Origin: Amphiscolops sp. MND2022
Taxonomy: Eukaryota
Direction of reading: 5' to 3'
NCBI GenBank assembly: GCA_964187785.1
Contig: OZ076411.1
Span: 35,836,001-35,900,000 of the forward strand
Length of the DNA: 64,000 nucleotides
Positions 10,189 through 28,132 of the stretch are shown here, piece after piece. How positions within the stretch are numbered: the first letter of the stretch is position 1; the number at the start of each line of letters is the position of its first letter. Made by a program: the position numbers and the translations under genes. The notes beneath the pieces were generated by a model, which was not told the origin of the DNA, searched no databases, and saw only the letters and a list, made by a program, of their open reading frames with translations.

Positions 10189-10312
10189 TGTCGCGCTATG
10201 ACTAACGCTCTAACGAATCACCAAAAGGCGCTTTCTATTATAAAAAATAACACTTGCAAAGAGAAACATAAAACTTGAACTAACGTTGTGTGGAGAGTGG
10301 AAAGTTGAAGTA

Positions 10313-10323
10313 AATATGGCGGC
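10313..10323 (+). promoter_or_regulatory. YY1-like motif in LTR U3
   Basis: AATATGGCGGC fits the AANATGGCGG consensus; single short motif. Confidence 0.3.
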
Positions 10324-10892
10324 GGCCATAACGCGGCGGCCTCGAAGTGGAGTAATAAGTAATGGAATACTACGGGAAAGGAATTGCACAAGTGAAAATT
10401 TCTATTTCTTACCGCGGATATTTGAATTTTAAAGCTGAGCTACCATTGGTAGCATGCAACACATGCCGGCCAGGCACTTCAACAGCTGTGCTGAACTGTT
10501 TTTATACCGCGCACACAGGCTGGAGATTCATTCTTTCCCGCCGGACGGCTGAGCTCAACTTACAGCTCTCTCTCTCTCTCTCTCTCTCCTCAACTTATCA
10601 ATTCCTCTACTTCTCTTACACTTACTCTCCCCCTTCTCCCCCTCGACTCTTACTCTCCACTTTCTCTTTGCTTACATTGCACTTGTCTTATCTCAGACTT
10701 ATAAAGTCAAACTTTCCTCCTTTTCTCCCTTCTCTCAAGCAAAAACTTATCTTTGCTTTTTCTCTATTCCCCAACAGAATTTTCTATCTTAGAAAATTCT
10801 CTTCAATTCAACTTGGTCTCCAGTTTGGTGAGTCGAAAATATCTTAGATTTTTTCTTTTAGAGGAGATTTTTTACTCTCCCTCTTTCTAACT

Positions 10893-11106
10893 AAATTATA
10901 TCTTAGAATAATTCCGCTGATTCAATTCTGCGGATTCTATTTTATAATAATTCCGTTGATACAATTCTGCGGTTGTTAAAATTATATCTTAAAATAATTC
11001 CGCTGATTCAATTCTGCGGAGTCTATCTTATAATAATTCCGTTGATACAATTCTGCGGTTGTTAATATTATATCTTAGAATAATTCCGCTGATTTAATTC
11101 TGCGGT
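10893..11106 (+). repeat. LTR-internal tandem repeat, 2.5 x 86 bp (five ~43-bp subunits); also at 27252-27465
   Basis: Recurring TAATTCCG(C/T)TGAT(T/A)(C/T)AATTCTGCGG core. Confidence 0.9.
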
Positions 11107-11776
11107 TTTCCCCTATTAACTCATTTGTCTTTACCATTCCCATATTCAAAAAGTCTTAATGCTATTCCTAAAAGAAGAGGAGTAGAGACTATAAAATTAA
11201 ATAGTGTTGTCTAAGTTATTACAACACCGAAACTGAATTTTTCGTAAAAAAACTTTCTTCGAACTAAAGGAAATTACTATGAATTTCCTTCGATGCTAAA
11301 TGTATTCATCAATTTGTGCCCTAGATTGAAATAGCTAAGATATTACTTCTGTTGCTGGTAAATAAATTTGGTGAGTTGACTGAATATTGTAAACAGTTGA
11401 ATAAAAACTGATATGTCTGAAGAATTTTATTATGTCCTGAAGTTCAGCTCTTTTATGTAATTCAACAAGTTTGCTAGCATATGCTTTTTTTTATAGTTCA
11501 GAGAGCTCATTTACATTCACTGCCTTGCACTTACTCACGCAAGTTCCTTTGTTCGCACGTACACGCAAGGCACTTTCTTTTCGGTATTACAAAAAATTAC
11601 GTTATTGAGACTTTTCTACTTGTTCTACTTCAATAAAACAACAGTTGTCTGAAAAGCACCTTGCAAAATGTTGTAACAGCTGAGCTGACTAATACGGATA
11701 ACAAATTTGGAATTCCCCTCTAAAAGAGGAAACTGTAAAATAGTAGAACTGAAATATATCCATGCGTGCGACAAAC

Positions 11777-11794
11777 TGGTGCGACCAGTGAGGC
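11777..11794 (+). promoter_or_regulatory. Primer-binding site of element 2
   Basis: TGGTGCGACCAGTGAGGC, 3 nt after the LTR. Cognate tRNA uncertain; the ..TGAGG end resembles elongator tRNA-Met complements. Confidence 0.75.
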
Positions 11795-12815: not shown

Positions 12816-14270
12816 ATGGCTGCGCAAAATTACTTGGCTTACCCAGACCTAGGCCGAGACCAATTCACAGGAACAGACCCAGATCAAGATCCTGAACAAT
12901 TCATACAGCTCATTGAAAAGAAGTTCCGGTTTTCTCATGGTGATACCCCAGCCAACGGACCAGCACTTGATGACTACAACTTCAGAAGAAAATCCTATTT
13001 TGCTACACTATTAAGAGGACCCGCAGCAGAGTGGTTCGAGACCAGCATCACAGACGCTAACACTTGGGCAGAAATCAGAGAGAGGTTCATAACGCGATTC
13101 GCAGATGGCAGAAACAAGTTTAGACACAGAATGGAAGCCGAACACGTCATCAGACGAGATGGAGAGGAAATAAAGAACTTCCTACACAGAATTAAAATAG
13201 TAGTCGGAAAAGGATGGCCAGATGATCTAGCCGGAGTCGCACAGAACAATAGAGACGCTGAAAGAGCAGCACAAGATAGACAAAGAAGACAGAGGTGCAT
13301 TGACTACTCACTGAGAGGCCTTCGACCCCCGAAACTGAGGGAAAAGGCACACGAATACTTAATGGATCATCCGAATGCAACTTGGGAGCAGTTCTCTCAA
13401 GCTGTAATAAACAAAGACCTTTCTTACACAGTAACTACCTCTCTCACCGGTGGAGAATCACACGCAGACCCACTTATCCAAGAATTGCGAGAAGACATCA
13501 AAGGAATCAAGCTACAAATCAAGGAACAGACGAACAACACTATCAATGCGATAGAGAAAACTGTTGATCCGAACGCAACAGGACGAAGAATGGCCACCAG
13601 GTTTTGCAGCTACTGCCGAACAAATGGGCATACGCCTAACTGGTGCAGAAAGAAGATGAGAGATGAAGAAATCAAGAAAGTTCAAAATGAATCCAACCCA
13701 GAGAGACGAATAACTTTCACCAATGATTACAACAAAAGAACTGGACCTGGACATGGTTCTAGATTCCAAACAAGACTACCCGATTCAGAAATCAGAAAAC
13801 ATATGGCTGTGGCACATCAACTAGCACTTGCTGGAGCCATGCAGTCAAACCCTGCCCGGAACCAATATGATATACCACAAAGAAGAAATTTCAACCCAGA
13901 ACGCCGACCTATGAATACAAGATTCAGTCCTGGTAACCAAAGATTTTCACAAGAAGGAAGAAGACCTTTTCTAAACAATTCTAACAATTCCAGAAGTGTT
14001 TCTCCTGGACCCCAAAGAGCAAGATCTCCGTTCAGCTTCAACAGAGACCAGCCTAGCTCTTTCAATCGCAACATACAACCTCTCCCACCAAGGAATAACT
14101 CCGTCTTTCAGAGACCGCAAAACAGAAACGAAAGACCTAACACCCCCACGCAGACTTATGAACAAAGATTCCCCAAAACAAACGACATGGGAAGGTCCAA
14201 CACAGTACAATTCCTTGAAACTGACTACTCTGTGAACTCGGTAGCCGACTTTCGCCCTTTAAACTACTAA
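12816..14270 (+). CDS. gag: Gag, 484 aa
   Basis: Retrotransposon-gag-like N-terminal region (LRGPAAEWF...W.EIRERFITRF), CCHC-like knuckle CSYCRTNGHTPNWC, R/N/P-rich tail. Confidence 0.93.
   Translation: MAAQNYLAYPDLGRDQFTGTDPDQDPEQFIQLIEKKFRFSHGDTPANGPALDDYNFRRKSYFATLLRGPAAEWFETSITDANTWAEIRERFITRFADGRNKFRHRMEAEHVIRRDGEEIKNFLHRIKIVVGKGWPDDLAGVAQNNRDAERAAQDRQRRQRCIDYSLRGLRPPKLREKAHEYLMDHPNATWEQFSQAVINKDLSYTVTTSLTGGESHADPLIQELREDIKGIKLQIKEQTNNTINAIEKTVDPNATGRRMATRFCSYCRTNGHTPNWCRKKMRDEEIKKVQNESNPERRITFTNDYNKRTGPGHGSRFQTRLPDSEIRKHMAVAHQLALAGAMQSNPARNQYDIPQRRNFNPERRPMNTRFSPGNQRFSQEGRRPFLNNSNNSRSVSPGPQRARSPFSFNRDQPSSFNRNIQPLPPRNNSVFQRPQNRNERPNTPTQTYEQRFPKTNDMGRSNTVQFLETDYSVNSVADFRPLNY
14258..14264 (+). 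promoter_or_regulatory. -1 ribosomal frameshift slippery site T TTA AAC
   Basis: Correctly phased in the gag frame two codons before the gag stop; the -1 frame is open from here into LLDTGA of pol. Confidence 0.85.
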
Positions 14271-14380
14271 GGTCTCCGAAAAACAAAAACAGCAGCAGTG
14301 CCCCGCTAAAATTTAGTCTTAACCTTTATTATTTCGCTGCCGGAGACTCACAAAAAGATAGTGGCTTAGAAATTGAATTT

Positions 14381-17300
14381 TTGCTTGACACTGGGGCGAC
14401 ATCCTCAATTATCAACTACAGAACCTTCAGAGAACTTTGTCAATTTCAACAAGACCTCGAACTCAACAGGAGCAACAACACAACTCGGAACTACTCTGGT
14501 CAAATCATCCCTATGATGGGATACATTTCGCTAAGTCTCTACTATGACTCCGATGGACAGCACAATTTCCCACTGACAGTTTGGATCACGGAGATGAAAA
14601 CGCAAAACCTGCTTGGAATGAACTTCTGCCAAGAGCAAGTCAACAAAATACATTTCGACCTTCCCGGCATAGAACTGAAAAGGCCTTTAAATACTTTCTG
14701 CTACGGAAGTCTTCAATTAAACAAAATTTACCCCTATGTATCACAAATCTTAACAGTCAAAATTCCTCACTCAATGTATATTGAACCAAAGACGACAAGA
14801 TGCTACAAGTTCGCTCCCGAAAACACGAAAAACTCCTTCCCCCCCGGATCCACGTTCCTACCCAATCGAAAAGCAGTCTCCACTGGACTCAATTTTATTA
14901 ACGTCCTATGTACGAGGTTCGAAAAGACTTTGCCAATCGTCATGGAAAACAACAAAAATCATACTATCACCTTGGTAAAGGGAACAATTGGATACTCAAT
15001 GCTCGACGTCTTGGACCAAGAAATCCCAAAATATCAGATTAGAAACCCTACAGAACTCGCCTATACCATTTTGAACGAAAATGAAGAATACAACGACTGT
15101 TTTCTACTACACTCAACTATACCCTCACAAGACTTGAGCGATTGCCTCAGGATAGAAGGAGGAAATTCAAAGACAATACTCAACAGGCCCGATCCAATCA
15201 TCATCTTTGTCCCTGCGGACCTGAAACCAAATAAGGGTTTTTCTAAAGAAATTCTAACTAACATACCCTCACTAAAGAACACTTGCTCTAAGCAAAGACC
15301 ACAGAAGGGAGAAACCATACCTTATTGGGACGAGACTTTGAAAAGATTCATTTATGTCCTAATCACAAAAACTAAAGCAAAAGACAAAATTGACCCACAA
15401 ATGCTGGTCCAATCCTTGGAAACGCTAAAGGCACATGCCAAAATGCACGGTATCAAGACGATCTCTATGTTACGAGAAGCCTCGGAATTAGAAGATTTCC
15501 AATGGCAAGATGTCACACACTTGATACAAGACGTTTTTGCCTATTCCGAAATACAACTACGAATCTTCACCAGAAACGAGCTAGACGTTTTCGCTATGAC
15601 CACAAGAGGAGACCCAGAATATGCGGTAGAAGACGAGATACAACAATTCTCAGAACAATTCCACCTCAAACACAGAGAGCTAGAAACAGATTTCACCAGC
15701 GATGCAAAGTCCTGCCAACCAACATGTGACGAACAATTCAAAATTTTCAGACCTAAAGAAGAAAATGAACGACTAATCGAATACTACCTACAATATCAGA
15801 ACAAGGAAGCAGTAAAATACATCAAGGAATTCGACTTTCGGTACTCCGACCTAACAGACGAAGAACTTGTCCTCCTGATAGACTTACTAATGGAAGCAAG
15901 AGATGTATACTCACAACATAAATTTGACGTTGGGAAAACCAAACAAAAATTTAATATTAAACTGGAACCCGGAGCAATACTAAAACGACAAAGACCCAGT
16001 AAAGTACCCTTACACTTAAGGGAAAGACTGGAGAAACTACTAACACAGCTTAAAGATGCAGATATCATCAGAGAAATGGGTGACGATGACGAAATGGGAT
16101 CTCTATTCGTGAATCCAATTATCTTACAACCCAAACACGATTATGTTAAACTGATCATAGACGCACGATATCTAAACTCGATTACTGATCTGACAAACTA
16201 CTCTTGGCCCTTAGAGCCCATCCAAACCATAATGACACTCATAAATGGATCAATCTTTTCTGTGAGTGATCTCTCATGCGCTTTTCACCAAGTACCACTA
16301 GACGAGCCTACACAGAAACTTACCAGCTTCATCATTGGCGGAAAACAATACACTTTCACCAGAGGATTCTATGGACTTAAAGGATTACCCAGCTTCTTCA
16401 GTCGTATGATGACAATCCACTTCGAACCCCTCATCAAGAAGAAACAAGCGATTACATACATCGACGATACGCTGATGCAAGCCAAAAGCAAACAAGAAAT
16501 GTTCACAGTAATCCAAGAATACCACAATTTACTACGAAAAGCCGGACTCAAAGCAGCACCCGACAAAACGCTTTTCTTCTTGAGGAAAGTCAAATTTCTT
16601 GGACACGTAATAACAGCAGAAGGAATACAACCAGTGGCAAAACGTGTTAAGGACCTCCATAATCTCAAATCACCAAAGACAAAAACCGAAGTCAAAAGTT
16701 TCCTTGGAGCACTCGGATTCTACAGCTGCTATATTAAAAATCTCCATGTTGATAGCAGACCATTTTACGAACTCACAAAGAAAGACACGAACTTCTGCTG
16801 GAATCAAGAACACGAAGACCTCTTCCAGGAAATAAAGAAACGAATCAGCGAAGACACAGTACTGGCAGTACCCTCAACGAAGTACCCCTTTCATATACAC
16901 GTCGATTCCTCTAACGTAGGGACAGGATGCATACTAATACAACAATTTCCCGAAGGGAAACGAATTATCTCCTTCAATTCACGAGTTTTTGCCAAAGAAG
17001 AACAAAAAATGTCAACCCTACATAGAGAACTGTGTGGCATCGTCTCCGCCCTTCAAACGTACGAACATTACATCATTGGATCCCCTTTCCCAATTTATCT
17101 ATACTGTGACCACAAACCCATTCTTTATCTTTGGGGACGAAAAGGACAAATCTCACCGCGATTCTTCAGGTATCAAGTAATTATATCCAAATTTCCAAAC
17201 CTGAGGATCATATGGACACCAGGAAGTAACTTAGCCTTCCCAGATATACTCAGTCGGAATGTCTCAATTGAAGAACATAAGACACATCAACTCAGCCACA

Positions 17301-19774
17301 AGATCCTACCAAATGACATACAATTCTTCGACGAACATGGAACACCGGTGCACTACAAGATAAAACATGAAGAAAATGAAGAAACTTCTAAGAACGACTT
17401 TTACCCTATTTTGTACGAGAAAGGAAACGAACGAAAAATCTTACATTTACAAAACGATGGAAATGACTTTACGGTCAACAACCTTTACGAAGAACCTGAT
17501 CTAACGAACATCGAATCTGCACAGGACTGTTTCGAGGCGGGGAAGACACTTGAAAAATACGAAGAACTACGAACCAGATCCGGCACACAAAACAGCACAC
17601 CCGATTTATCACAAAATACTTACAGTTCTCTCAACAGCGACACAGACGACGAAGCTCCCACGAAAAAAGAACCACAAGAAGTCAATGAAACCAACTACGA
17701 GATTAATACCGAAATCCTCTCAGAACCTGAAGAAGATACCCCCGAAACAGGCCAGGTAGTCAAAAACTTCAAAATCTCAGAAGCAATACCCCCAATACAA
17801 GAAAAATCAAAGAATCCAGCCCGCGATCTCGTCAACAAACTTGATAAACTATCCAAAGAAGTAGATCTCAACGTCACAACAATCTTACAAGAACAAATAA
17901 ACGACCCCGTGCTCAGGGTAGTCCGACAATGGGTGAGAACAGGAAACAAGCCTGCGCCAAAATCCCCAGAGCTACAGCACTCTAAAGGTCTTATGCGATA
18001 CTTCCAAGAGTTTGATAGACTAACAATAGAAGAGCCTGGAAACCTCCTTTGTTATAACGAACCTACAGATAGCCCTGAAGACGAAAATCTACGAATATGC
18101 TTACCTCTCTCTCTATTTCTTGCCTGTTTTCGAATGGGACATTACAATGACCTCGGAGGTCACATGGGAGCGGAAAAAACCTTCTTGAACGCCAAAAGAT
18201 TTTACTACTGGCCAGGGATGCACGACTGGATCTGCGCACTCACACAAGATTGTGTCAGCTGCCAGTCTAACAAATCCAAACAACGAAGAAACAACGAGGT
18301 CCCCCTAGAAGATTGCGAAACTGAAACTCAAGTATTCAGAACAATCCACATAGACCACAAAGGACCACTCAACCCTCCTAGTCGTGGAAACTCACATTGC
18401 CTCCTTATTATCGACGCCTTCTCACGCTACTTGATGGCATACCCTGTTAGGGACACAGGGGCACAATCGACAATCAACGCGATGGAAAAATGGATTATGC
18501 ACTACGGCATCCCGCAATCCATCATACATGACAGAGGAACAGCTTTTATGAACACGGAATTTGTCAATTGGACTAAAGAATTTGGCATCACCCTTAGACC
18601 AAGGACAGCACATTCACCTTGGACAAATGGCAAAGTAGAAACCCAAAATCAGCACATTGCACGATACTGGAGAAATTTCCTCAACGAATCTGGAAACAAT
18701 TGGGCTTTACTAGCAGCAAAATTTGCATTTGCTCATAACACCAGTGTCAACTATACCACTGGAAAGACACCATACGAAATAGTCTTCTGCAATAAACCAC
18801 AGATACCTATGAGCCTGAAGTTGGGTCTATACCGTAATAAAAATAAGAATTGCAGATCACAGTTCTGCAACGGACTGCCTCCTCACTGCCACAGCGAAAA
18901 CCAAGTTAAAAACGAACTGCTGAATGGACTATTAAGACCTCAACTATCTCAAAACCTGCTTGAAAGAGAGACCGCCTTCAAGAAAATCTATTCGTCCACT
19001 TACGAAAAATGCAGAAAACAAACAGCTCGATCTCATGCCTACAGAAACAGATTTAAACTAGGCAGCCATCTCAACATCGGACAAAAGGTTTTGTTAGAAA
19101 ACCATCGGAAAGACCTCTCCAAAAGTCAAAAACTTCAACAACTGCGATTAGGACCGTTTACGGTTACCAAGAGAATCACCAACACAACATACCAAATAAA
19201 AGACGATCAGAACCCCAAAAATCTCCGAACTGTCCATAGAAATCATTTAATAGAATACTTTCCCAAAGAGGAAACACTCCCCCCTCTTATAGAAGAATAC
19301 ACAACCCCCTACCGTGGAGACACGGATTTCTATAACAATTTTGTCAAAGGAAGAATAGAACGACTTAATGTTTCAGAACCACAGATACTCGGGGATCTCT
19401 GCATTTTACCAGTCCGAAACCAACAAAGACAGACCACCGCACAAAAACGAGTGAGAACTCCCCAGAGCACCGACTCTGGTATTATTTCCCCAGAAAATCA
19501 CCGGTTGGGAACACCAACAACTCCGGATCAGCCTACTACATCCCGTCCTCCTGGTTCAACTACTCCTATCCAAACACTGACGCAACAAATAACACCCGAA
19601 CCCTTGACTACCACACCGGCTACTTCGACCAAATCTTTGACACCCCTACAAGAACTCAGGCGAGCGGTTGCAAGTCACGTCGAAAGAAATCCCCGCTATC
19701 AGCGAGCACAACCCAACCAACCAGCACCACTGTCCATCCTTCGGCAAAAAACTCGAGTAGGCTACAAAGCCTAA
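14381..19774 (+). CDS. pol: Pol: protease, dUTPase-like spacer, macrodomain, RT, RNase H, integrase (translated as Gag-Pol from ~14260)
   Basis: LDTGA; RT LIIDARYLN, FHQVPL, FYGLKG, YIDD; RNase H VDSS, ELCGIV, CDHKP; integrase H..H/CVSC, IDHKGP, HDRGTAF, NGKVE; GPF motif. Confidence 0.97.
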   Translation: MLDTGATSSIINYRTFRELCQFQQDLELNRSNNTTRNYSGQIIPMMGYISLSLYYDSDGQHNFPLTVWITEMKTQNLLGMNFCQEQVNKIHFDLPGIELKRPLNTFCYGSLQLNKIYPYVSQILTVKIPHSMYIEPKTTRCYKFAPENTKNSFPPGSTFLPNRKAVSTGLNFINVLCTRFEKTLPIVMENNKNHTITLVKGTIGYSMLDVLDQEIPKYQIRNPTELAYTILNENEEYNDCFLLHSTIPSQDLSDCLRIEGGNSKTILNRPDPIIIFVPADLKPNKGFSKEILTNIPSLKNTCSKQRPQKGETIPYWDETLKRFIYVLITKTKAKDKIDPQMLVQSLETLKAHAKMHGIKTISMLREASELEDFQWQDVTHLIQDVFAYSEIQLRIFTRNELDVFAMTTRGDPEYAVEDEIQQFSEQFHLKHRELETDFTSDAKSCQPTCDEQFKIFRPKEENERLIEYYLQYQNKEAVKYIKEFDFRYSDLTDEELVLLIDLLMEARDVYSQHKFDVGKTKQKFNIKLEPGAILKRQRPSKVPLHLRERLEKLLTQLKDADIIREMGDDDEMGSLFVNPIILQPKHDYVKLIIDARYLNSITDLTNYSWPLEPIQTIMTLINGSIFSVSDLSCAFHQVPLDEPTQKLTSFIIGGKQYTFTRGFYGLKGLPSFFSRMMTIHFEPLIKKKQAITYIDDTLMQAKSKQEMFTVIQEYHNLLRKAGLKAAPDKTLFFLRKVKFLGHVITAEGIQPVAKRVKDLHNLKSPKTKTEVKSFLGALGFYSCYIKNLHVDSRPFYELTKKDTNFCWNQEHEDLFQEIKKRISEDTVLAVPSTKYPFHIHVDSSNVGTGCILIQQFPEGKRIISFNSRVFAKEEQKMSTLHRELCGIVSALQTYEHYIIGSPFPIYLYCDHKPILYLWGRKGQISPRFFRYQVIISKFPNLRIIWTPGSNLAFPDILSRNVSIEEHKTHQLSHKILPNDIQFFDEHGTPVHYKIKHEENEETSKNDFYPILYEKGNERKILHLQNDGNDFTVNNLYEEPDLTNIESAQDCFEAGKTLEKYEELRTRSGTQNSTPDLSQNTYSSLNSDTDDEAPTKKEPQEVNETNYEINTEILSEPEEDTPETGQVVKNFKISEAIPPIQEKSKNPARDLVNKLDKLSKEVDLNVTTILQEQINDPVLRVVRQWVRTGNKPAPKSPELQHSKGLMRYFQEFDRLTIEEPGNLLCYNEPTDSPEDENLRICLPLSLFLACFRMGHYNDLGGHMGAEKTFLNAKRFYYWPGMHDWICALTQDCVSCQSNKSKQRRNNEVPLEDCETETQVFRTIHIDHKGPLNPPSRGNSHCLLIIDAFSRYLMAYPVRDTGAQSTINAMEKWIMHYGIPQSIIHDRGTAFMNTEFVNWTKEFGITLRPRTAHSPWTNGKVETQNQHIARYWRNFLNESGNNWALLAAKFAFAHNTSVNYTTGKTPYEIVFCNKPQIPMSLKLGLYRNKNKNCRSQFCNGLPPHCHSENQVKNELLNGLLRPQLSQNLLERETAFKKIYSSTYEKCRKQTARSHAYRNRFKLGSHLNIGQKVLLENHRKDLSKSQKLQQLRLGPFTVTKRITNTTYQIKDDQNPKNLRTVHRNHLIEYFPKEETLPPLIEEYTTPYRGDTDFYNNFVKGRIERLNVSEPQILGDLCILPVRNQQRQTTAQKRVRTPQSTDSGIISPENHRLGTPTTPDQPTTSRPPGSTTPIQTLTQQITPEPLTTTPATSTKSLTPLQELRRAVASHVERNPRYQRAQPNQPAPLSILRQKTRVGYKA
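15188..15568 (+). other. TARG1/OARD1 (Poa1p-like) macrodomain embedded in Pol between PR and RT
   Basis: RFIYVLITKTKAKDKIDPQMLVQSLETLKAHAKMHGIKTISMLRE...FQWQDVTHLIQDVF..SEIQLRIF aligns by eye with TARG1 [45 protein letters not shown]...LQWENVSAMIEEVF..TDIKITV. Confidence 0.85.
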
Positions 19775-19782: not shown

Positions 19783-20169
19783 ATGCCTTGTCATAAAGTT
19801 TACCTAAACCTACCATGGCAAGTTCCACGAGAACTCCAATCTTTAAACGTTCTACACGTTACAATCACAAAAATCTACTGGACCTACACAAACAAACTAG
19901 TTAGAATTTGCTTCTACTCCAACGACCCAGACCCGAGCCCCCACAAACAACCTACGCCCCGAAAATCAAATCTTCATGTTCACCCAGAATCAAAAACGTT
20001 TGCTCAACTATATCAACACCTAGCATACCATGCAGTCAACCATCACGACCCTATCCTAGAAGAACTCTTATCCTACATGCCTACCCTAATTCCTGACCTA
20101 CAACCTTCACCACCTAATACTCAGAAGGACCTATTCTGCTGCTCTACTATTTACTCACCTAGCTCCTAG
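19783..20169 (+). CDS. Accessory small protein A (128 aa), unknown function
   Basis: ATG 8 nt after the pol stop; shares a motif pattern with the ORFs at 21223-22173. Confidence 0.65.
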   Translation: MPCHKVYLNLPWQVPRELQSLNVLHVTITKIYWTYTNKLVRICFYSNDPDPSPHKQPTPRKSNLHVHPESKTFAQLYQHLAYHAVNHHDPILEELLSYMPTLIPDLQPSPPNTQKDLFCCSTIYSPSS

Positions 20170-20326: not shown

Positions 20327-20977
20327 CTACTCAATCTCCAGGAACCCTCCTCGCTCCGCCAAGCGCCGCAGCTGAGCCGCCCGCTCTCCCATGGTCCACA
20401 AAGAATACAGACGGGACCACTGTCCCCTCTCGAAACTGGTCAGTTGCGAAAAGCCGTTTATGTAGGCTCGCAACTGGAAAATTATGATTTCACCAAGAGG
20501 GGACAATAGGGTCTGCTCCCAACGGGCCCCCAGGTTAGCCCGCATGAAACTAAATAATGAATTGGGACCGGGAGGCCCCGAGACAGAGAACCCTGGAGTC
20601 CCCCGAAGAGAACTGGTTAGAGACGCCCAGTTTTCCAGGCGGTTCACGTCTCGGCGGGTATAGAGCCCCATAAAGCTCTGCTCAGCCGGGTTCTCCAGCT
20701 CTCCCCGGGCAATAGTAGCAGGCGCTTGAGGCACAATACTGTCAGTCCTCGGGGCCACAACCGCCACGAACGACCCACCACTAGAGGACGGACCTGCTGA
20801 AGAAGCAGGGGACACAGAACTAACAGCAGTAGAGGACGGACCAGCTGCAGAAGAACTAGAAGATACAGTTGTCGGGCCATTCCCCGACTCTTCGTCGGTC
20901 GAGGACTCCTCGTAGTAGTCCGAAAAGTTCTGATTGTTGCTCATTCTAAACACAACATTGTGCTTATCAAAAGTCAT
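20327..20977 (-). CDS. Antisense accessory ORF (216 aa): acidic, Ser-rich N-half and globular-looking C-half
   Basis: ATG-initiated 651-bp ORF; no long sense-strand ORF overlaps it; local composition differs from the A/C-rich sense genes. Confidence 0.6.
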   Translation of the reverse strand: MTFDKHNVVFRMSNNQNFSDYYEESSTDEESGNGPTTVSSSSSAAGPSSTAVSSVSPASSAGPSSSGGSFVAVVAPRTDSIVPQAPATIARGELENPAEQSFMGLYTRRDVNRLENWASLTSSLRGTPGFSVSGPPGPNSLFSFMRANLGARWEQTLLSPLGEIIIFQLRAYINGFSQLTSFERGQWSRLYSLWTMGERAAQLRRLAERGGFLEIE

Positions 20978-21222: not shown

Positions 21223-21444
21223 ATGATCATAATCTTCAAAATTGACAACCGTCTTTCACAAATCACCGATATCCAGAAGGAACCCTCAACGCAAAACATC
21301 ATCATACAAGCATACGCAATAGCTGAAGAAGAAAGTGAAACCTACACTTGTGTGCCAGCATCACCCATCTACCCTCTACTGGAGAGCTTGCTATATAACA
21401 ACACCCCTACTGAAGTCTTCACTAGAGCCAAGTCAGTCATTTAA
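21223..21444 (+). CDS. Accessory small protein B (73 aa)
   Basis: ATG directly after ctcacag; stop overlaps the next start (TAATG). Confidence 0.55.
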   Translation: MIIIFKIDNRLSQITDIQKEPSTQNIIIQAYAIAEEESETYTCVPASPIYPLLESLLYNNTPTEVFTRAKSVI

Positions 21445-21839
21445 TGTCCTCTCCCGGAGTCGCCGTGTTCCGCGGAAATAATTACTACTTCCACACACAG
21501 TTTCAACCTCCTGTTCCTTGGACCCCCATACAACTCAAGGGCCAATACGAAATACAGTCAATCTTCTACGAGATCACTACCTCTGCAATTCAAGTGCGTA
21601 TACTCACACCAGAAGACAAAGAAGCTCTAGTCCTCTTCCCTATTCACTTCGGCTCCAAGGAATACGCTTACTTATTCCTATCGTTCAAGCAATATATACT
21701 CCAACACCCTGCAGTCCTCAAAGACAAGGCTTTCGACGACTTGGTTTACTTTATGGACATCACTCTCACCTCCAACCCCTTTGAAGAAGAAGTTAGAATC
21801 AAATACCTTCACAGCCTAGTCGACACTTATGATGTTTAA
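21444..21839 (+). CDS. Accessory small protein C (131 aa)
   Basis: TAATG-coupled to B, overlaps D by 11 nt; element-typical codon bias. Confidence 0.7.
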   Translation: MSSPGVAVFRGNNYYFHTQFQPPVPWTPIQLKGQYEIQSIFYEITTSAIQVRILTPEDKEALVLFPIHFGSKEYAYLFLSFKQYILQHPAVLKDKAFDDLVYFMDITLTSNPFEEEVRIKYLHSLVDTYDV

Positions 21840-22173
21840 GATTCAGCTCAAGTTTCTCTGGCGCCACCCTGAAACAAATACACTTCTCGAAATTCTCTCT
21901 ATCGCTTGGAAAGAAAACGCACCTTCACTACAAATCGAACTCCATAGCCTCCGACCACAAAACCCAGGACATTGGCTCATCCCAGTTGACACCAACTCCC
22001 AAGAGGCTACTGATCTCTCACTCGCACTAAAGGAATATAGGCAAATTGCCTATCTCGACCACATCCACCCTCTAACACTGTTCCTCCTCAACAAGCTCAT
22101 TGACTTCCTCGAATTGAGACGACGAAACAAAACCTCTCCCAGTCTACAATCAATCCGTGACAACTACAATTGA
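21829..22173 (+). CDS. Accessory small protein D (114 aa)
   Basis: Start overlaps the end of C; shares the A/B/C motif pattern. Confidence 0.7.
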   Translation: MMFKIQLKFLWRHPETNTLLEILSIAWKENAPSLQIELHSLRPQNPGHWLIPVDTNSQEATDLSLALKEYRQIAYLDHIHPLTLFLLNKLIDFLELRRRNKTSPSLQSIRDNYN

Positions 22174-22218
22174 ACTTTCAGCAATGGTTGAAGTTAGTCT
22201 CTTTTAACTTCCTATTTT

Positions 22219-22750: not shown

Positions 22751-24898
22751 ATGAAATTATTTTTCTTACTCTTCTTATGCGCCAATTTCGCGCCCGTTGT
22801 GAACTCACAACGTTCAACGCCAAACCTCGCTAGCGTTGCTAAAAAATTGCGAGTAACTCATTTCGACTGCGGCGAAATGACACAAAATAAGCTCTACGCC
22901 TTGAATCAAGTAGAGCAATGCAATGTGGCCCCGGAAAACTTAGAAGTAAGTCGTGCTAGCGTGACGTTATACACTAAACACTTTCGTCGCACTATCAACG
23001 CTACTATGTGCCGTGTGAAACACCAGAGTGAAGAATGGCATTGTGGTCATAATGACCACTCCAGTATGTCAATCCTACACAACGGAATCACCAGCGATAT
23101 TTCCTTGTCACCCGAAACCTGTAAGGCCATGGGCGAAGGCAAAGAAGTCATGATCCATGGACAACCCCTCAAATTTAAGAAAGGAGTCAAACAAGTACAG
23201 ACGAGAAACGCCAAATACGGAAAAAGTTGGGATGGAGTACGTGACCCTGATACCCGTAATGAGTGCAAGACAGGCGGATGGATTAAACGCGAAACCTTCG
23301 AATCTCATATTCAAGACGTAGAATTATCAGTCAAAACCAGAGACGGGAAAATCCTCACACCCTTCCAGATGGTTCTCCCCTGCCCCCTGGAACAACTCGG
23401 CTGCGAAACCACGTCATTGGACCCGTACGCCTATACATGGGCAGAGCCAGATAACTGCGTGCTCGCAGTCCACAGAAAAGAAATAGTGAATATGATCAAA
23501 CATGGCTCTAACTACTATATAGTTAGCGGCAACGACTCCACTACCAAGTTCCTATTCGAAATATACAACAGGCCACAGAAATACTGCAACAAACCCGATG
23601 ATGTCTACCCTACCAATTACGAATCCCTCTACGTTTCGACCCAATTTGGTGGCTTCGACATGACTTCTGGCAGACGACTCGGCATCTCCATGGGAGAAAC
23701 CTCCAAACTTCAATATTACTCACCCAACGATGGTTCTGGTAATGGCAGACTCCACCTCTTCAGAGGCCCCAGCGACTCCAACCCCAACACACCACATTAT
23801 CTCAACATGGATTACGAACTCCACCAAGGAACCAAGTTAGATTATCTCTTCTTTGAGAGCACCCGCTTACTCGAAGCTTCAGAGATCCAGCTATTGAAAG
23901 CTCAATGTGAGCAAGAACGAACACAAATCCTTACCATCCTGATGTTATCCATGGAAAACCCACGACTCGCCGGATACATGCTCACGGGAAATCGCTCGAT
24001 GTTCCTGAACACAGATGGTAGCCTCGCATGGCTCTACCACTGCCCGGAATCCCACTCACCTCTTCACACGATGAACCAATGCTACGACCGCATACCAATC
24101 TTCTACAAGGGAGTGGTCGCCTTTGTAGACCCCATAACCCGACAAACATATCCTAACGCGAACGTACAAAACTGCACAGATCGTATTAAGAACCTCTTCC
24201 AACTGGACATGGAAGACAAAGACTCCTGGTTCACCCTTACACCTTCACCCGAACATCGGGACCGGCCTGCTATCTTCGGACCCAAAGACATCCAGCCAAT
24301 GATTACCAGATCTTTCCCAGGATCACAGGACGCGGGAATGTACACTCCCAAGCAACTCTCCGAGTTTTGGGACAACATCCTCATCAGCGCCGCATCACGT
24401 AATGCCCTCCAGAAGTTCTCAAGAGAGCTCATCATACCCTCCATGGCCCACAGCGGACCAGAATCCTTCGCGTATTACGCACCTCGTACAGATTTCTATG
24501 TCGACGGAATGATTTCACCCGACTACTTTAAAAATCAGTTCCTCGAAACATTCGGAAGTATATCTTATGTACTAGAACTCTGCGGAGCGTACTTTGGCGC
24601 TTTCCTTTTTATCAAGTTCGTCATAGATATCACGGTACTAGTCTTCCGCTACTTCGAACTTCGTCACCTTACGGGTAACACACTGAGCTTCACTAAAACC
24701 TTGCTCAGTGCTTCGTACAACCTTTTCTTTACCTCTGTTTTAACTTCCGTATTTACCCCGCGGGCCCCTTTCGAGGATAGCATTGAAGACAAAAGGGTAA
24801 AAACAGAAGACGAAGAAAAAGGAGTAGAACTCCAAATCCTAAAACAAAAAGAGGAATCACTATATCCCTCGGTACAGAGCTTTGTTGCTCCAATATGA
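22751..24898 (+). CDS. env: Envelope glycoprotein, class III-like (chuvirus G / herpes gB-like), 715 aa
   Basis: Signal peptide MKLFFLLFLCANFAPVVNS; FDC...LYALNQVEQC and C...HCG..HS cysteine pattern; sequons NAT, NDS, NRS, NCT; C-terminal hydrophobic TM segment (LELCGAYFGAFLFIKFVIDITVLVF). Confidence 0.85.
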   Translation: MKLFFLLFLCANFAPVVNSQRSTPNLASVAKKLRVTHFDCGEMTQNKLYALNQVEQCNVAPENLEVSRASVTLYTKHFRRTINATMCRVKHQSEEWHCGHNDHSSMSILHNGITSDISLSPETCKAMGEGKEVMIHGQPLKFKKGVKQVQTRNAKYGKSWDGVRDPDTRNECKTGGWIKRETFESHIQDVELSVKTRDGKILTPFQMVLPCPLEQLGCETTSLDPYAYTWAEPDNCVLAVHRKEIVNMIKHGSNYYIVSGNDSTTKFLFEIYNRPQKYCNKPDDVYPTNYESLYVSTQFGGFDMTSGRRLGISMGETSKLQYYSPNDGSGNGRLHLFRGPSDSNPNTPHYLNMDYELHQGTKLDYLFFESTRLLEASEIQLLKAQCEQERTQILTILMLSMENPRLAGYMLTGNRSMFLNTDGSLAWLYHCPESHSPLHTMNQCYDRIPIFYKGVVAFVDPITRQTYPNANVQNCTDRIKNLFQLDMEDKDSWFTLTPSPEHRDRPAIFGPKDIQPMITRSFPGSQDAGMYTPKQLSEFWDNILISAASRNALQKFSRELIIPSMAHSGPESFAYYAPRTDFYVDGMISPDYFKNQFLETFGSISYVLELCGAYFGAFLFIKFVIDITVLVFRYFELRHLTGNTLSFTKTLLSASYNLFFTSVLTSVFTPRAPFEDSIEDKRVKTEDEEKGVELQILKQKEESLYPSVQSFVAPI

Positions 24899-24929
24899 AT
24901 TATTATCTCATTTCGTAGTTTACGTTTAG

Positions 24930-25532
24930 AATTTAGAACCCTTATTCGACCTCCCAAACCTGGACGACGACATCCCTAACTCTATCTTAGAAGACGACTT
25001 GCAGATAGAACCCTTATCACCTTCTGACCTGCTGTCAACTGCTTCTCCCACAACTATTACCTTTCTCCTAGATCCCCCAGACTCAACAGTTCCTTCTCCG
25101 ATTCCAAGCGCCCTAACAACAACACCCTCTCCAACGACACCACTACAACTCCCCTTTCCGCTGTCATTTACAGAAGAGGTAGCGCCTATCCCATCAACTC
25201 AACATCCACCTCGATCGCCCCAACATCCACCCCGCTTCGGCGGAAAAGACATAAGACGGGCACTACCCAGGAAACACCAACAACAATGGAATGACAAAAT
25301 AACAGATGACACGCCACTGAAGAAACAACACAAGCGGGAGTACTTCACTAAACGAGCCAGACACGTTAAGAAACCCAGATTCAACACAGAGTTGAAATAC
25401 ACTCTCCTCCCACAATTCTCAACTTGGAAAATCGTTTTCTGGGATAACAAGAGACAAGAGTACACCATAGAGAACCCAGCCCTAAAGGGACAAAGACTAA
25501 CGGTCCCCCTAAGAGCCATCTCAGCACAATGA
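24930..25532 (+). CDS. Accessory ORF X: acidic N-terminus, Pro/Thr-rich middle, basic C-terminus; no ATG
   Basis: Frame open from 24930 (track calls a TTG start at 24999); its stop overlaps the next ATG (ATGA at 25529-25532). Confidence 0.55.
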   Translation, partial: NLEPLFDLPNLDDDIPNSILEDDLQIEPLSPSDLLSTASPTTITFLLDPPDSTVPSPIPSALTTTPSPTTPLQLPFPLSFTEEVAPIPSTQHPPRSPQHPPRFGGKDIRRALPRKHQQQWNDKITDDTPLKKQHKREYFTKRARHVKKPRFNTELKYTLLPQFSTWKIVFWDNKRQEYTIENPALKGQRLTVPLRAISAQ

Positions 25533-26431
25533 ATCGGAGGCTAAACCCAGACGCTATCCCCTTCATCCCAAAAAGCACTCCTTACTTCCCCAAAGCTAAC
25601 GACTGGCCACCTCTATCCAGGACAGAGAATAAAGATGACCTCGAGACACTCGAGGGAATCAAAAGATTGAACAAATGGATCGCTGAACTAGAAGTCTCAA
25701 CTAGCCCACAAAGTGAAAAGGTAACCCCGATCCTAAGGAAATCGTTCCCCATAACCGACATAAAACAGTCTAGAACAAAGCTTGCTAGTGAAATGAAACA
25801 ACTCCAAAACTTGGCAGAAGAAACGCGGACTAAATGTAATCACTTGGAACTCACAATATCCGATCTACAAGCGACAATCAAGTTTCAAGGCGCCCTACTC
25901 AACAAAACCAACGTATTAGACGCAAGAAGCGGTGAACCCATCCTTTGGCACATACCCGCTTTTTCCACACTATACAGAAAAGCAAAGACCTCCCCGAATG
26001 ATACGTTGAACAACATCAAAAATAGCTTCACTAGCCCTATCTACACTACCCACCTAACCGGCTGCAAAATATCCCTCAGACTATTCCCTTATGGCGCCAA
26101 CATCTTCCGCGGAACCCATTCCTCAATTTCTTGTGATCTACACCCCAGCGACTTCACTCTCCCACGAACGTGGCCTTTCGAGCAACAATTGATCGTCTCA
26201 ATCATAGACCAAAAAGACAAGAACAACAAATGGTCCATCTCCTTTCCCTATCCCTCCAAAACAGAAGAGTATGAAGACCCGCACAAGAACGACTACACAC
26301 TCCCAGGACTGATGAGAGAAGACTTCATCGCGCACACAAAACTCCTGGTAAACTTTAGAGAAGCCTTCCTAAACAATGACTCCGTCATAATCCAAATTCA
26401 ATTTGACAGACCTCTTTTTTCTAAACCCTAG
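25529..26431 (+). CDS. PAM2 motif + coiled coil + TRAF-C/MATH domain protein (300 aa), lacking RING and Zn fingers
   Basis: ILWHIPAFSTLY...SPIYT...GCKISLRLFPYG...GTHSSI...WPFEQQLIVSIIDQ...FI....FLNNDSVIIQIQF follows the TRAF-C consensus (LIWKI, SPPFYT, GYK.C.RLYLNG, GTHLS, WPF.QKV...LLDQ, Y..DDTIFI.V). N-terminal LNPDAIPFIP. Confidence 0.88.
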   Translation: MNRRLNPDAIPFIPKSTPYFPKANDWPPLSRTENKDDLETLEGIKRLNKWIAELEVSTSPQSEKVTPILRKSFPITDIKQSRTKLASEMKQLQNLAEETRTKCNHLELTISDLQATIKFQGALLNKTNVLDARSGEPILWHIPAFSTLYRKAKTSPNDTLNNIKNSFTSPIYTTHLTGCKISLRLFPYGANIFRGTHSSISCDLHPSDFTLPRTWPFEQQLIVSIIDQKDKNNKWSISFPYPSKTEEYEDPHKNDYTLPGLMREDFIAHTKLLVNFREAFLNNDSVIIQIQFDRPLFSKP

Positions 26432-26533: not shown

Positions 26534-26544
26534 AGGGGGGTGAG
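26534..26544 (+). promoter_or_regulatory. Polypurine tract of element 2
   Basis: AGGGGGGTGAG 1 nt before the 3' LTR. Confidence 0.85.
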
Positions 26545-26545
26545 C

Positions 26546-28132
26546 TGTCGCGCTATGACTAACGCTCTAACGAATCACCAAAAGGCGCTTTCTATTATAA
26601 AAAATAACACTTGCAAAGAGAAACATAAAACTTGAACTAACGTTGTGTGGAGAGTGGAAAGTTGAAGTAAATATGGCGGCGGCCATAACGCGGCGGCCTC
26701 GAAGTGGAGTAATAAGTAATGGAATACTACGGGAAAGGAATTGCACAAGTGAAAATTTCTATTTCTTACCGCGGATATTTGAATTTTAAAGCTGAGCTAC
26801 CATTGGTAGCATGCAACACATGCCGGCCAGGCACTTCAACAGCTGTGCTGAACTGTTTTTATACCGCGCACACAGGCTGGAGATTCATTCTTTCCCGCCG
26901 GACGGCTGAGCTCAACTTACAGCTCTCTCTCTCTCTCTCTCTCTCTCCTCAACTTATCAATTCCTCTACTTCTCTTACACTTACTCTCCCCCTTCTCCCC
27001 CTCGACTCTTACTCTCCACTTTCTCTTTGCTTACATTGCACTTGTCTTATCTCAGACTTATAAAGTCAAACTTTCCTCCTTTTCTCCCTTCTCTCAAGCA
27101 AAAACTTATCTTTGCTTTTTCTCTATTCCCCAACAGAATTTTCTATCTTAGAAAATTCTCTTCAATTCAACTTGGTCTCCAGTTTGGTGAGTCGAAAATA
27201 TCTTAGATTTTTTCTTTTAGAGGAGATTTTTTACTCTCCCTCTTTCTAACTAAATTATATCTTAGAATAATTCCGCTGATTCAATTCTGCGGATTCTATT
27301 TTATAATAATTCCGTTGATACAATTCTGCGGTTGTTAAAATTATATCTTAAAATAATTCCGCTGATTCAATTCTGCGGAGTCTATCTTATAATAATTCCG
27401 TTGATACAATTCTGCGGTTGTTAATATTATATCTTAGAATAATTCCGCTGATTTAATTCTGCGGTTTTCCCCTATTAACTCATTTGTCTTTACCATTCCC
27501 ATATTCAAAAAGTCTTAATGCTATTCCTAAAAGAAGAGGAGTAGAGACTATAAAATTAAATAGTGTTGTCTAAGTTATTACAACACCGAAACTGAATTTT
27601 TCGTAAAAAAACTTTCTTCGAACTAAAGGAAATTACTATGAATTTCCTTCGATGCTAAATGTATTCATCAATTTGTGCCCTAGATTGAAATAGCTAAGAT
27701 ATTACTTCTGTTGCTGGTAAATAAATTTGGTGAGTTGACTGAATATTGTAAACAGTTGAATAAAAACTGATATGTCTGAAGAATTTTATTATGTCCTGAA
27801 GTTCAGCTCTTTTATGTAATTCAACAAGTTTGCTAGCATATGCTTTTTTTTATAGTTCAGAGAGCTCATTTACATTCACTGCCTTGCACTTACTCACGCA
27901 AGTTCCTTTGTTCGCACGTACACGCAAGGCACTTTCTTTTCGGTATTACAAAAAATTACGTTATTGAGACTTTTCTACTTGTTCTACTTCAATAAAACAA
28001 CAGTTGTCTGAAAAGCACCTTGCAAAATGTTGTAACAGCTGAGCTGACTAATACGGATAACAAATTTGGAATTCCCCTCTAAAAGAGGAAACTGTAAAAT
28101 AGTAGAACTGAAATATATCCATGCGTGCGACA
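26546..28132 (+). repeat. 3' LTR of element 2
   Basis: Copy of 10189-11773 with 2 extra bp in the (CT)n tract. Confidence 0.97.

Follow-up and report, generated by a model that had tools for sequence, protein, structure and literature searches.

A young, intact Ty3/gypsy-type endogenous retrovirus carries a RING-less TRAF-domain accessory gene as its last ORF

The window, that is, the whole 64-kb stretch of DNA that was analysed, contains a young, intact endogenous retrovirus of the envelope-carrying Ty3/gypsy type (errantivirus-like, Metaviridae), whose last ORF, located between env and the polypurine tract, encodes a TRAF reduced to the TRAF-N coiled coil and the TRAF-C/MATH domain. This TRAF-domain gene (25529..26431, 300 aa) is intact, belongs genuinely to the retrovirus lineage and has long been retained there as an accessory gene. 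As the most probable role of its product we tentatively propose a dominant-negative-like interference with TRAF-dependent signalling. All coordinates refer to the forward strand unless otherwise stated.

The 17.9-kb element (10189-28132) is flanked by a TTCG target-site duplication read from the sequence (5' copy, 10185..10188; 3' copy, 28133-28136) and bounded by LTRs with TG...CA ends (5' LTR, 10189..11773; 3' LTR, 26546..28132), which were delimited by blastn of both ends and by reading of their termini. The LTR pair aligned over 1587 columns with no mismatches and a single gap of 2 nt (99.87% by blastn), and an 86-nt tandem repeat lies inside the 5' copy (10893-11105). A putative primer-binding site, assigned by position alone, starts with TGG 3 nt past the 5' LTR (11777..11794), and a polypurine tract, AGGGGGGTGAG (26534..26544), was read directly 5' of the 3' LTR; with these, the features of Metaviridae (TG..CA LTRs, target-site duplication, putative primer-binding site and polypurine tract) are all present.

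From 5' to 3' the element carries gag, pol, several small ORFs, env, a Met-less ORF and the MATH ORF. The intact gag (12816..14270, 484 aa) matched Pfam Retrotrans_gag at an E-value of 1e-4, slightly below the cut-off. The pol frame (14225..19774), also intact and of PR-RT-RNaseH-IN type, opens at 14225 in the -1 frame relative to gag, overlapping its 3' end, and encodes 1797 aa when counted from the listed start at 14381; it matched the Pfam profiles RVT_1, RT_RNaseH, Integrase_H2C2, rve and Integrase_p58_C, and more weakly gag-asp_proteas. The env-like gene (22751..24898, 715 aa), intact as well, is of the class III viral fusion glycoprotein type (PF24664 Monjiviricetes_fusion, E = 5e-31); 280 relatives were found in public assemblies and its dN/dS was 0.04, while its product, used as a phmmer query, gave no match in the PDB.

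The preliminary description of this DNA had reported a coiled coil followed by a full TRAF-C/MATH domain, and five kinds of evidence (Pfam, phmmer, AlphaFold2, Foldseek and a heptad test) agreed on that architecture. The Pfam profiles MATH_2 (E = 8.9e-12, profile positions 3-135 of 136) and TRAF-mep_MATH (E = 1.4e-10, positions 2-125 of 125) both matched above their curated cut-offs; since they are covered nearly end to end, the MATH domain is full length. Significant phmmer matches in the PDB were confined to the TRAF domains of TRAF5/4/3/2/1 (E = 1.8e-7 to 2e-3). An AlphaFold2 monomer model built from a 46-sequence alignment (mean pLDDT 77.8) consisted of a long helix (aa 75-125, pLDDT >90; 25751..25903) and then a beta sandwich (aa 131-293; 25919..26407). 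Used in Foldseek against the PDB, this model retrieved TRAF domains at ranks 1-44 (E = 2e-12 to 7e-10, TM on target 0.59-0.77), with TRAF6 and meprin below them; the alignments reached 235 columns and thus included the stalk helix, and the best structural matches among cellular proteins were TRAF4/5/3/1/2. The helix has the character of a TRAF-N-like coiled coil, as also seen in the BLASTP alignments: 67% of its heptad a/d positions were occupied by L, I, V or M, compared with 39 +/- 6% in shuffled sequences, and none of 2000 shuffles reached this value.

The RING/zinc-finger module is absent, as had been noted from the letters alone. Neither a RING nor a TRAF zinc finger was detected in the protein by Pfam at E-values up to 0.1, and no cysteine occurs before residue 104, whereas canonical TRAFs retrieved in the same search show zf-TRAF and RING. 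Among cellular TRAFs, TRAF1 is the sole member in which the N-terminal RING/zinc fingers are absent or partial. The scores against the Pfam MATH models also differed, at 42-46 bits for the element's protein and 130-157 bits for canonical TRAFs. The ORF is open from its ATG to the stop, with no internal stop and no intron required, consistent with its earlier listing as the intronless last ORF before the polypurine tract. An element-like codon bias had been ascribed to it; in base composition (A.35, C.29, G.16, T.21) the ORF agrees with pol and env and departs from the flanks.

Our favoured reading, interference with TRAF-dependent signalling, would follow from these parts. The coiled coil would form an oligomer, a trimer if it behaves like those of cellular TRAFs, and host proteins would be gripped by their short peptide tails in the MATH groove; lacking the RING/zinc-finger effector part, the protein would not signal by itself and could do no more than sequester its partners or link them to other factors, so that TRAF-dependent innate-immune or cell-death signalling may be disturbed in cells expressing the element. 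We infer this decoy role in immunity or apoptosis purely from the architecture.

The groove loop is altered and variable. The preliminary description had stated that the receptor-contacting Arg is kept within an RLF motif, and in the alignments R184-L-F186 indeed faces R-A-Y of TRAF5; R184 is invariant in the family, and the Tyr position is taken by Phe186, an R-L-F that is shared by a genuine Nematostella TRAF3. Likewise described as altered, the 'SSS' and 'SGCP' contact stretches face different residues here: the Ser triad is not kept, and the SGCP stretch is replaced by a family-conserved T-L-P-x-L. Since these positions differ, canonical TRAF-binding motifs may go unrecognised. The most variable stretch of the protein is a loop within the MATH domain (aa 241-261; aa identity 0.40, pN/pS 0.59) that sits opposite the TRAF 'SSS' region.

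Such a fast-evolving groove loop is what an arms race with a host factor would be expected to produce, and could also suit a ubiquitin-ligase substrate adaptor, in which a host restriction factor would be captured by the MATH groove and degraded through an E3 ligase recruited elsewhere on the protein, with MATH-domain substrate receptors and lentiviral accessory proteins as analogues. In several ligase systems it is a MATH domain that recognises the substrate, and the MLLE domain is also found in an E3 ligase, which the PAM2-like motif described below could in principle reach. However, no region of the protein has a pN/pS >1, Pfam revealed no domain that recruits a ligase (BTB, RING, SIAH-type or other), and in structure the protein is closest to stalk-bearing TRAF domains rather than to MATH domains of the SPOP/USP7 type. 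We therefore regard a ligase adaptor as improbable, and retain signalling interference as the preferred role.

Relatives of the element were found at seven loci of two assemblies (L001-L007). Pol, the small ORFs, env (PF24664), the Met-less ORF and MATH follow one another in this order in L001-L004 and L006, which are from assembly ERZ25074608, and in L007, from a different assembly, ERZ26859043; L005 keeps the 3' part of this order and has retained the MATH ORF, with pol missing and most of env deleted, and a further locus, L008, has a related MATH gene with neither pol nor env upstream. Across the seven related loci the identity of the MATH protein to the window copy ranged from 99% down to 29%. 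The pol/env/MATH identities were 99/99.9/99% for the closest relative, 87-92/94-96/57-67% for the next tier, 76/75/35% for the third and 60-66/55/29% for the most distant; that the three drop together fits vertical descent within the lineage.

In all of the lineages examined the MATH ORF is intact. Its pairwise dN/dS was 0.11-0.23, values to be read with saturated dS, and for the same element pairs its dN was 0.20-0.30, about 10 times the env dN of 0.027. The TRAF-domain gene is the fastest-evolving gene of the element, yet constrained, a pattern expected of a host-interface gene, and by these substitution rates it is under purifying selection and not neutral. The preliminary description had left the presence of the gene in other copies and its mode of evolution to be established, and both speak for its retention.

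These observations bear on the reading of the gene as a passenger, either part of a host gene that was picked up in a single transduction and brings the element no advantage, or a chimera created in assembly. Core retrotransposition of LTR elements needs no TRAF-domain protein, so the gene is dispensable for that machinery, and L005 holds it despite its missing pol and reduced env, as L008 does a related gene. Against this, the ORF has stayed intact and in position across two assemblies to 29% identity, at a dN/dS of 0.11-0.23, it has come to resemble the rest of the element in composition, and it is enclosed by a near-identical LTR pair that is flanked by a target duplication. A passenger is accordingly most improbable, the dN/dS and the conserved position in distant relatives largely refuting it as far as sequence comparison goes.

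The claim that the gene is a captured host TRAF held in part. BLASTP matched aa 37-294 to the entire TRAF domain of Nematostella TRAF3 (E = 7e-16, 25% identity) and aa 61-291 to a TRAF4-like protein of Rhopilema (E = 1e-14, 26% identity); both alignments run through the coiled coils of these TRAFs, and identity to canonical TRAFs was 20-26% overall. Because the homology to animal TRAFs spans the coiled coil as well as TRAF-C, a cellular TRAF ancestry of the gene is plausible. The capture is not recent: the gene has diverged in step with pol and env, reaching 29% identity in another assembly, which by this comparison makes the capture an old one. Nor could a donor be named, as the bootstrap values of sister groups in the NJ tree were just 26-56%: the sister relation to the Rhopilema TRAF received 26%, and a group of all divergent single-MATH proteins, including a protein of a large-DNA-virus-like contig, 56%.

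At the N-terminus of the protein, a sub-threshold PAM2-like motif (Pfam PF07145; aa 3-16, 25535..25576) was recognised. When the first 40 residues were searched, PF07145 was the sole Pfam match in five lineages (the window copy, L001, L002, L004, L005), while in L006 it ranked first among three; scores in these six lineages were 15-19.8 bits (E = 6e-4 to 0.02), compared with a cut-off of 20 bits. The residues L5, N6, P7, A9, P11, F12 and P14 are invariant in the family alignment, within an N-terminus that is overall just 53% identical among lineages, and aa 14-33 were modelled as disordered (AlphaFold2, pLDDT <50). The motif suggests another or additional partner of the TRAF-domain protein, and may provide a second docking site for an MLLE protein, e.g. 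poly(A)-binding protein.

Taken further, the motif would make the protein a post-transcriptional adaptor, docking on the MLLE domain of cytoplasmic poly(A)-binding protein while the trimeric TRAF domain holds Gag/RNP or host factors of mRNA decay or translation, thereby favouring translation, stability or packaging of the polyadenylated RNA of the element. This rather unlikely reading draws on the recurrence of the PAM2 match, on its coverage of the invariant residues in an otherwise variable N-terminus and on its place at the extreme, disordered N-terminus, the typical setting of a short linear motif. It has to be set against scores that all remained under the cut-off, when 2/10 control peptides gave unrelated matches by chance at E = 0.02-0.075, and against six motif sequences that are homologues and not independent trials; the protein of L007, a more distant relative, gave no PAM2 match, and a search of the PDB with the N-terminal peptide returned no match.

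Between env and the TRAF-domain gene lies an ORF, o177, of 200 codons from stop to stop (24930..25532; dN/dS 0.07-0.11) that lacks any Met codon and whose TGA overlaps the ATG of the MATH ORF (ATGA). Both the absence of Met codons and the ATGA overlap are shared by the window copy and L001-L006, and the C-terminal half of o177 is still recognisable in L006 and L007. A TTTAG following a T-rich tract (24925..24929), a candidate 3' splice acceptor, ends exactly where o177 opens and is invariant in six lineages, the surrounding spacer being otherwise variable. Given the Met-less ORF with its conserved ATGA overlap and the invariant TTTAG, a spliced subgenomic mRNA would be the probable source of expression, on which the Met-less ORF would be read first and the MATH ORF reached by termination-reinitiation at ATGA. 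An interpretation of the env-to-MATH spacer as an ATG-free leader was rejected, as it contains 2-7 ATGs in other frames.

Besides gag, pol, env and the TRAF-domain gene, the element carries at least five conserved ORFs. Three small ones lie between pol and env: o128 (19783..20169, 128 aa), an accessory ORF without a known domain that is present in L001-L004, L006 and L007 (aa identity 40-99%, dN/dS 0.05-0.13); o131 (21444..21839, 131 aa), conserved in L001-L004 (92-100%) and L006 (49%; dN/dS 0.03-0.07); and o114 (21829..22173, 114 aa), which overlaps the 3' end of o131 and is conserved in L001-L004 (78-100%), L006 (55%) and L007 (37%; dN/dS 0.06-0.08). An antisense ORF (20327..20977, reverse strand, 216 aa) is open in all lineages examined, with lengths of 211-233 aa in L002, L003, L004 and L006 and a pN/pS of 0.27-0.65, and had no Pfam match.

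TRAF cargo in LTR elements is already known, contrary to the preliminary statement that no LTR retrotransposon had been reported with it. The giant gypsy-like Burro/GYPSM1 elements of planarians carry MATH_TRAF_C (Jurka 2007; Grohme et al. 2018; Arkhipova & Yushenova 2019, PMC6431247), which in Dugesia tigrina forms a separate accessory ORF, and combine it with BIR, BCL2-like, ankyrin and SUMO-like motifs (PMC6431247). Compared by description, Burro resembles the present element as a gypsy-like LTR element with MATH_TRAF_C and a viral-type env, the relatives of the Burro env being mononegavirus fusion glycoproteins. The layout is different here: Burro exceeds 30 kb, whereas the present element has 17.9 kb; its MATH domain lies inside or upstream of an ORF1 polyprotein of ~5000 aa, in contrast to a stand-alone, 3'-terminal gene of 300 aa; and its env is in frame between gag and pol, whereas here the ORFs are separate and env follows pol. 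No BIR, BCL2 or other apoptosis-related domains were found by Pfam in the other ORFs of our element, and no ankyrin match either. The pairing of MATH_TRAF_C with BIR and BCL2-like motifs in Burro, together with the existence of RING-less or viral TRAF homologues, provides a precedent for the decoy reading, and the MATH_TRAF_C cargo of the planarian elements is not an isolated curiosity.

The metazoan env-carrying errantiviruses (Chary & Hayashi, eLife 2026, PMC13524379) share with the element the LTRs, gag, PR-RT-RH-IN, a class III (gB/G-like) env, the GAG-POL-ENV order and multi-copy, near-intact insertions; that survey sought three ORFs, TRAF/MATH being unmentioned, whereas in the present lineage these three are joined by six or more conserved ORFs, of which the TRAF-domain gene is one. 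Cellular TRAFs (TRAF1-6, Nematostella TRAF3 and Rhopilema TRAF4/5-like) have the coiled coil and TRAF-C in common with the element's protein, at 25-26% identity over the TRAF domain, and differ from this intronless, retroelement-encoded form in their RING/zinc fingers, in the SSS/SGCP residues and in the PAM2-like N-terminus found here. The best viral structural matches of the element's protein were megalocytivirus and giant-virus TRAF-like proteins (E = 2e-10 to 5e-5, 10-16% identity in structural alignments); they are likewise TRAF-domain proteins in a viral or mobile genome, but belong to DNA viruses. One megalocytivirus protein, ISKNV ORF111L, binds TRADD and induces apoptosis (PMC3352826); it keeps its RING.

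Complex retroviruses manipulate their hosts through accessory genes, and to our knowledge almost nothing is known of such genes outside vertebrates. More speculatively, and with low confidence, the lineage could represent undescribed 'complex' invertebrate retroviruses with gag, pol, a class III env and at least six accessory ORFs (one antisense), among them a trimeric RING-less TRAF with a PABP-docking PAM2 motif that would be translated by termination-reinitiation after a spliced Met-less ORF. We know of no virus or cell in which a RING-less TRAF domain is fused to a PAM2 motif; if true, this protein would do in invertebrates what the accessory genes with which complex retroviruses of vertebrates manipulate their hosts do there, and the Met-less ORF with its ATGA, the antisense ORF and the three small ORFs suggest an expression strategy as elaborate as theirs. 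Because the copy is intact and very young and the gene has kept its position through deep divergence while evolving fastest under constraint, it offers a usable entry into the dealings of invertebrate retroviruses with innate-immune and cell-death adaptors or with the mRNA machinery.

Outside the genes of the element, the remaining ORFs of the window were retroelement remnants only. An Rfam scan of the window gave no match, PHROGs, as expected, gave none either, and a scan of IMG/VR and JGI metagenome contigs for relatives yielded no viral contig and one weak fragment. A CFAP100-like host exon was observed in the flank of the element, its best named matches being from gastropods (41-52%) and a coral (43%).

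An LTR retroelement with a 5' LTR (10189-11773, +) and a 3' LTR (26546-28132, +) spans 10189-28132 (+); its final gene is the MATH ORF (25529-26431, +), an uninterrupted ATG-to-stop reading frame of 300 codons. Both LTRs have TG...CA ends and align over 1587 columns with no mismatches and one 2-nt gap, and a TTCG duplication is found on both sides of the element. The 5' LTR is followed by a putative primer-binding site starting with TGG, and the 3' LTR is preceded by a polypurine tract; the MATH ORF is the final gene before this tract, as the preliminary description had placed it. The element carries gag (12816-14270, +), pol (PR, RT, RNase H and integrase; opening at 14225, in the -1 frame and overlapping the gag end, and ending at 19774, +) and an env-like gene (22751-24898, +; Pfam Monjiviricetes_fusion, E 5e-31). 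No stop or frameshift was found in any element gene of the window copy, the gag/pol frame change being the usual overlapping arrangement. The coding strand of the MATH ORF is A-rich and G-poor, like pol and env and unlike the flanks, in line with the element-like codon bias first noticed. Each LTR also contains 2.5 copies of an 86-nt tandem repeat (10893-11105 and 27252-27464), and the 3' LTR a (CT)12.5 microsatellite (26923-26947), probably the source of the single 2-nt gap.

The 300-aa product matched Pfam MATH_2 (E 8.9e-12, profile positions 3-135 of 136) and TRAF-mep_MATH (E 1.4e-10, 2-125 of 125), both over the curated cut-offs, and its only significant PDB matches by phmmer were the TRAF domains of TRAF5, TRAF4, TRAF3, TRAF2 and TRAF1. 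An AlphaFold2 model (mean pLDDT 77.8) built from 46 aligned sequences, both family members and canonical TRAFs, predicted a beta sandwich and two helices, a shorter one at aa 35-57 and a long one at aa 75-125 (pLDDT >90). In a Foldseek search of the PDB with this model, TRAF4/5/3/1/2 TRAF domains occupied ranks 1-44 (E 2e-12 to 7e-10), followed by TRAF6 and meprin; the alignments extended up to 235 columns and therefore included the stalk helix. L, I, V or M filled 67% of the a/d heptad positions of the long helix, versus 39 +/- 6% in shuffled sequences, none of 2000 shuffles reaching 67%. These analyses agree on the proposed coiled coil followed by a full TRAF-C/MATH domain. No RING or TRAF zinc finger was detected in the product by Pfam, and no cysteine lies N-terminal to the coiled coil, as expected for a protein described as lacking the RING/zinc-finger module. 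Because this module is absent, the product falls outside the full TRAF-family definition: TRAF-domain-like working is predicted, but it is not a canonical TRAF. The earlier residue remarks also held, since R184-L-F186 aligned with R-A-Y of TRAF5 (Nematostella TRAF3 also has R-L-F at this site) and different residues were found opposite the TRAF "SSS" and "SGCP" stretches.

From 5.8 billion proteins, 12 relatives of the product were retrieved, each representing 1-32 member sequences, the near-full-length ones ranging from 99% down to 57% identity; further, more distant relatives came from a profile search against 1.84 billion cluster representatives. Genomic context was taken for eight element-family MATH proteins (loci L001-L008). 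Six loci, five from ENA assembly ERZ25074608 (L001, L002, L003, L004 and L006) and one from another assembly, ERZ26859043 (L007), showed the order pol, small ORFs, PF24664 env, a homologue of the methionine-less ORF that separates env from MATH in the window, and MATH, the homologue lying immediately 5' of MATH in all six. In L005 the env end, the methionine-less ORF and MATH were kept, pol and most of env having been lost by deletion. Amino acid identities to the window for pol, env and MATH dropped in parallel, from 99, 99.9 and 99% in L003, through 87-92, 94-96 and 57-67% in L001, L002 and L004, and 76, 75 and 35% in L006, to 60-66, 55 and 29% in L007. The MATH ORF was intact in L001, L002, L004, L005 and L007 despite breaks or losses in pol or env, which comprised, besides the L005 deletion, two pol frame changes and one in-frame env stop in L001, one pol frame change each in L002 and L004, and at least one in L007. 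The MATH gene thus belongs, as a conserved accessory gene, to a lineage of env-bearing gypsy-type endogenous retroviruses, and it is present in other copies of the family. The eighth locus, L008, has a related MATH gene (P0044, of the L007-type group) without pol or env, whose 5' end lies inside one copy of a 2.3-kb direct repeat (8006-10293 and 13886-16167, 98% identical); L008 may represent a copy that has been rearranged or domesticated, or else a non-autonomous derivative.

Pairwise Nei-Gojobori dN/dS of the MATH ORFs among diverged copies was 0.11-0.23, with synonymous sites mostly saturated (least saturated pair: dS 0.47, omega 0.23); the gene is thus neither confined to this copy nor evolving neutrally. 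For the same element pairs, env showed dN 0.027 and omega 0.04, the small ORFs and the methionine-less ORF omega <=0.13, and MATH dN 0.20-0.30 and omega 0.14-0.20, indicating that MATH, though constrained, is the fastest-evolving protein of the element. Within it, variability peaks at the aa 241-261 loop, which aligns with the TRAF "SSS" region (aa identity 0.40, pN/pS 0.59), and constraint is strongest in the last strands, aa 262-293 (pN/pS 0.13).

Three small sense ORFs lie between pol and env (19783-20169, 21444-21839 and 21829-22173, all +; the last two overlap by 11 nt), have no recognisable domain and are kept in related loci with dN/dS 0.03-0.13. In the gap between them, an antisense ORF of 216 aa (20327-20977, -) is open at the same position in L002, L003, L004 and L006 (211-233 aa), with 99% identity to the window in L003 and 36-75% in the other three, where pN/pS was 0.27-0.65; it has no Pfam match and may be an antisense gene of the element. 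Between the small ORFs and the env start lies a direct duplication of 138 nt (22204-22508) whose copies are 90% identical.

The methionine-less ORF (24930-25532, +) has 200 codons in the window and 192-227 over the window and L001-L006, contains no Met codon in any of these seven sequences, and in all seven its TGA overlaps the MATH start codon as ATGA. It is under purifying selection (omega 0.07-0.11) and has no Pfam domain; its first half is Pro/Ser/Thr-rich and its C-terminal half strongly basic. An invariant TTTAG, preceded by a T-rich tract within an otherwise variable spacer, ends exactly where this ORF opens and may be a splice acceptor. Together, these features suggest that splicing at TTTAG would join an upstream exon whose start codon would begin translation of the methionine-less ORF, and that the MATH ORF would be reached by termination-reinitiation.

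Invariant positions of the MATH-protein N-terminus are confined to the first 14-16 residues and include, in the family alignment, L5, N6, P7, A9, P11, F12 and P14. PAM2 is the motif by which proteins dock onto the MLLE domain of poly(A)-binding protein (PABP). When the N-terminal peptide of each lineage was scanned alone against Pfam (40 residues; 70 for L006), PAM2 (PF07145) was the sole match in the window, L001, L002, L004 and L005 and the best of three in L006, with E 6e-4 to 0.02 and 15-19.8 bits over these six lineages, below the cut-off of 20; the L007 peptide gave no PF07145 match, and among ten element-derived control peptides there were two unrelated Pfam matches (E 0.021 and 0.075). 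Given the control matches, the absence in L007 and the scores under the cut-off, this sub-threshold PAM2-like motif is suggestive rather than established. A PABP-linked post-transcriptional role, the main alternative for the protein's function, is unlikely; a mechanism as a decoy, the role first proposed, or as an adaptor is plausible and is put forward tentatively. The first interpretation as a whole is supported in part.

Capture from a host TRAF, the origin first proposed, is consistent with BLASTP alignments spanning the coiled coil and TRAF-C of RING/zf-TRAF-bearing cellular proteins, namely Nematostella TRAF3 (residues 305-533 with aa 37-294, 25% identity, E 7e-16) and a Rhopilema esculentum TRAF4-like protein (aa 61-291, 26%, E 1e-14), but the phylogeny names no donor. 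In a neighbour-joining tree of 132 MATH domains (171 columns), bootstrap values were 95% for the window family, 100% for the L006 family, 92% for the two joined and 90% for the L007 group, whereas a wider group of all divergent single-MATH proteins reached 56% and its link to the Rhopilema TRAF 26%; naming a cellular donor on these deep links was rejected. The wider group takes in a protein from a dense, intronless, large-DNA-virus-like contig that carries HSP70, kinases, a BIR-RING protein and three MATH genes, and so may reflect a long-branch artefact. It is the conserved gene order, not the tree, that supports one origin within the retroelement lineage. For a flanking host exon in the window, the closest named relatives were gastropod and coral proteins (41-52% identity).

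Env-carrying Ty3/gypsy elements with class III env are known across Metazoa, and their survey makes no mention of TRAF or MATH (PMC13524379). The statement that no LTR retrotransposon with this cargo had been reported is nevertheless incorrect, since planarian giant gypsy elements (Burro/GYPSM1) have a published MATH_TRAF_C domain, which shares their ORF1 polyprotein with BIR, BCL2-like and ankyrin motifs and in a Dugesia tigrina element forms a separate upstream accessory ORF; Burro/GYPSM1-type env is also similar to mononegavirus glycoproteins (PMC6431247). The window element differs from Burro in size and gene order, in its stand-alone, 3'-terminal MATH without BIR and BCL2 partners, and in the PAM2-like N-terminus of its MATH protein. 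The best viral structural matches of the product were megalocytivirus and giant-virus TRAF-like proteins; the megalocytivirus homologue ISKNV ORF111L has a RING (PMC3352826).

A related single-MATH protein, P0084, lies in a dense, intronless gene array (L013 1-17785 and L014 1-17089) whose other members include HSP70, protein kinases, a BIR-plus-RING (IAP-like) gene and a further two MATH genes (three in all), present in a JGI and an ENA metagenome on contigs of up to 194 kb; it looks like a large DNA virus with several TRAF-like genes. Five proteins from other ENA metagenome assemblies (P0015, P0018, P0021, P0024 and P0027; L009-L011) come from intronless ORFs that encode 4 to 13 MATH domains in tandem (one also has an N-terminal RING) and outscore canonical TRAFs against the family profile, chiefly through the summed scores of their many domains.

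Elsewhere the window is mostly occupied by other retroelement remnants (1288-6052, -; 36769-48032, -; 55244-61146), which share only 23-30% identity with the element's pol. They include a gypsy-type PR/IN stretch (at the 5' end), a GC-rich block of about 51% GC in which many short ORFs carry zinc-knuckle gag, RT and integrase pieces, and RT-RNase H fragments near 57-58 kb. Just 3' of the element, a tandem array (30856-33982) comprises three copies of a period of about 1355 bp, 97-98% identical and with internal sub-repeats.
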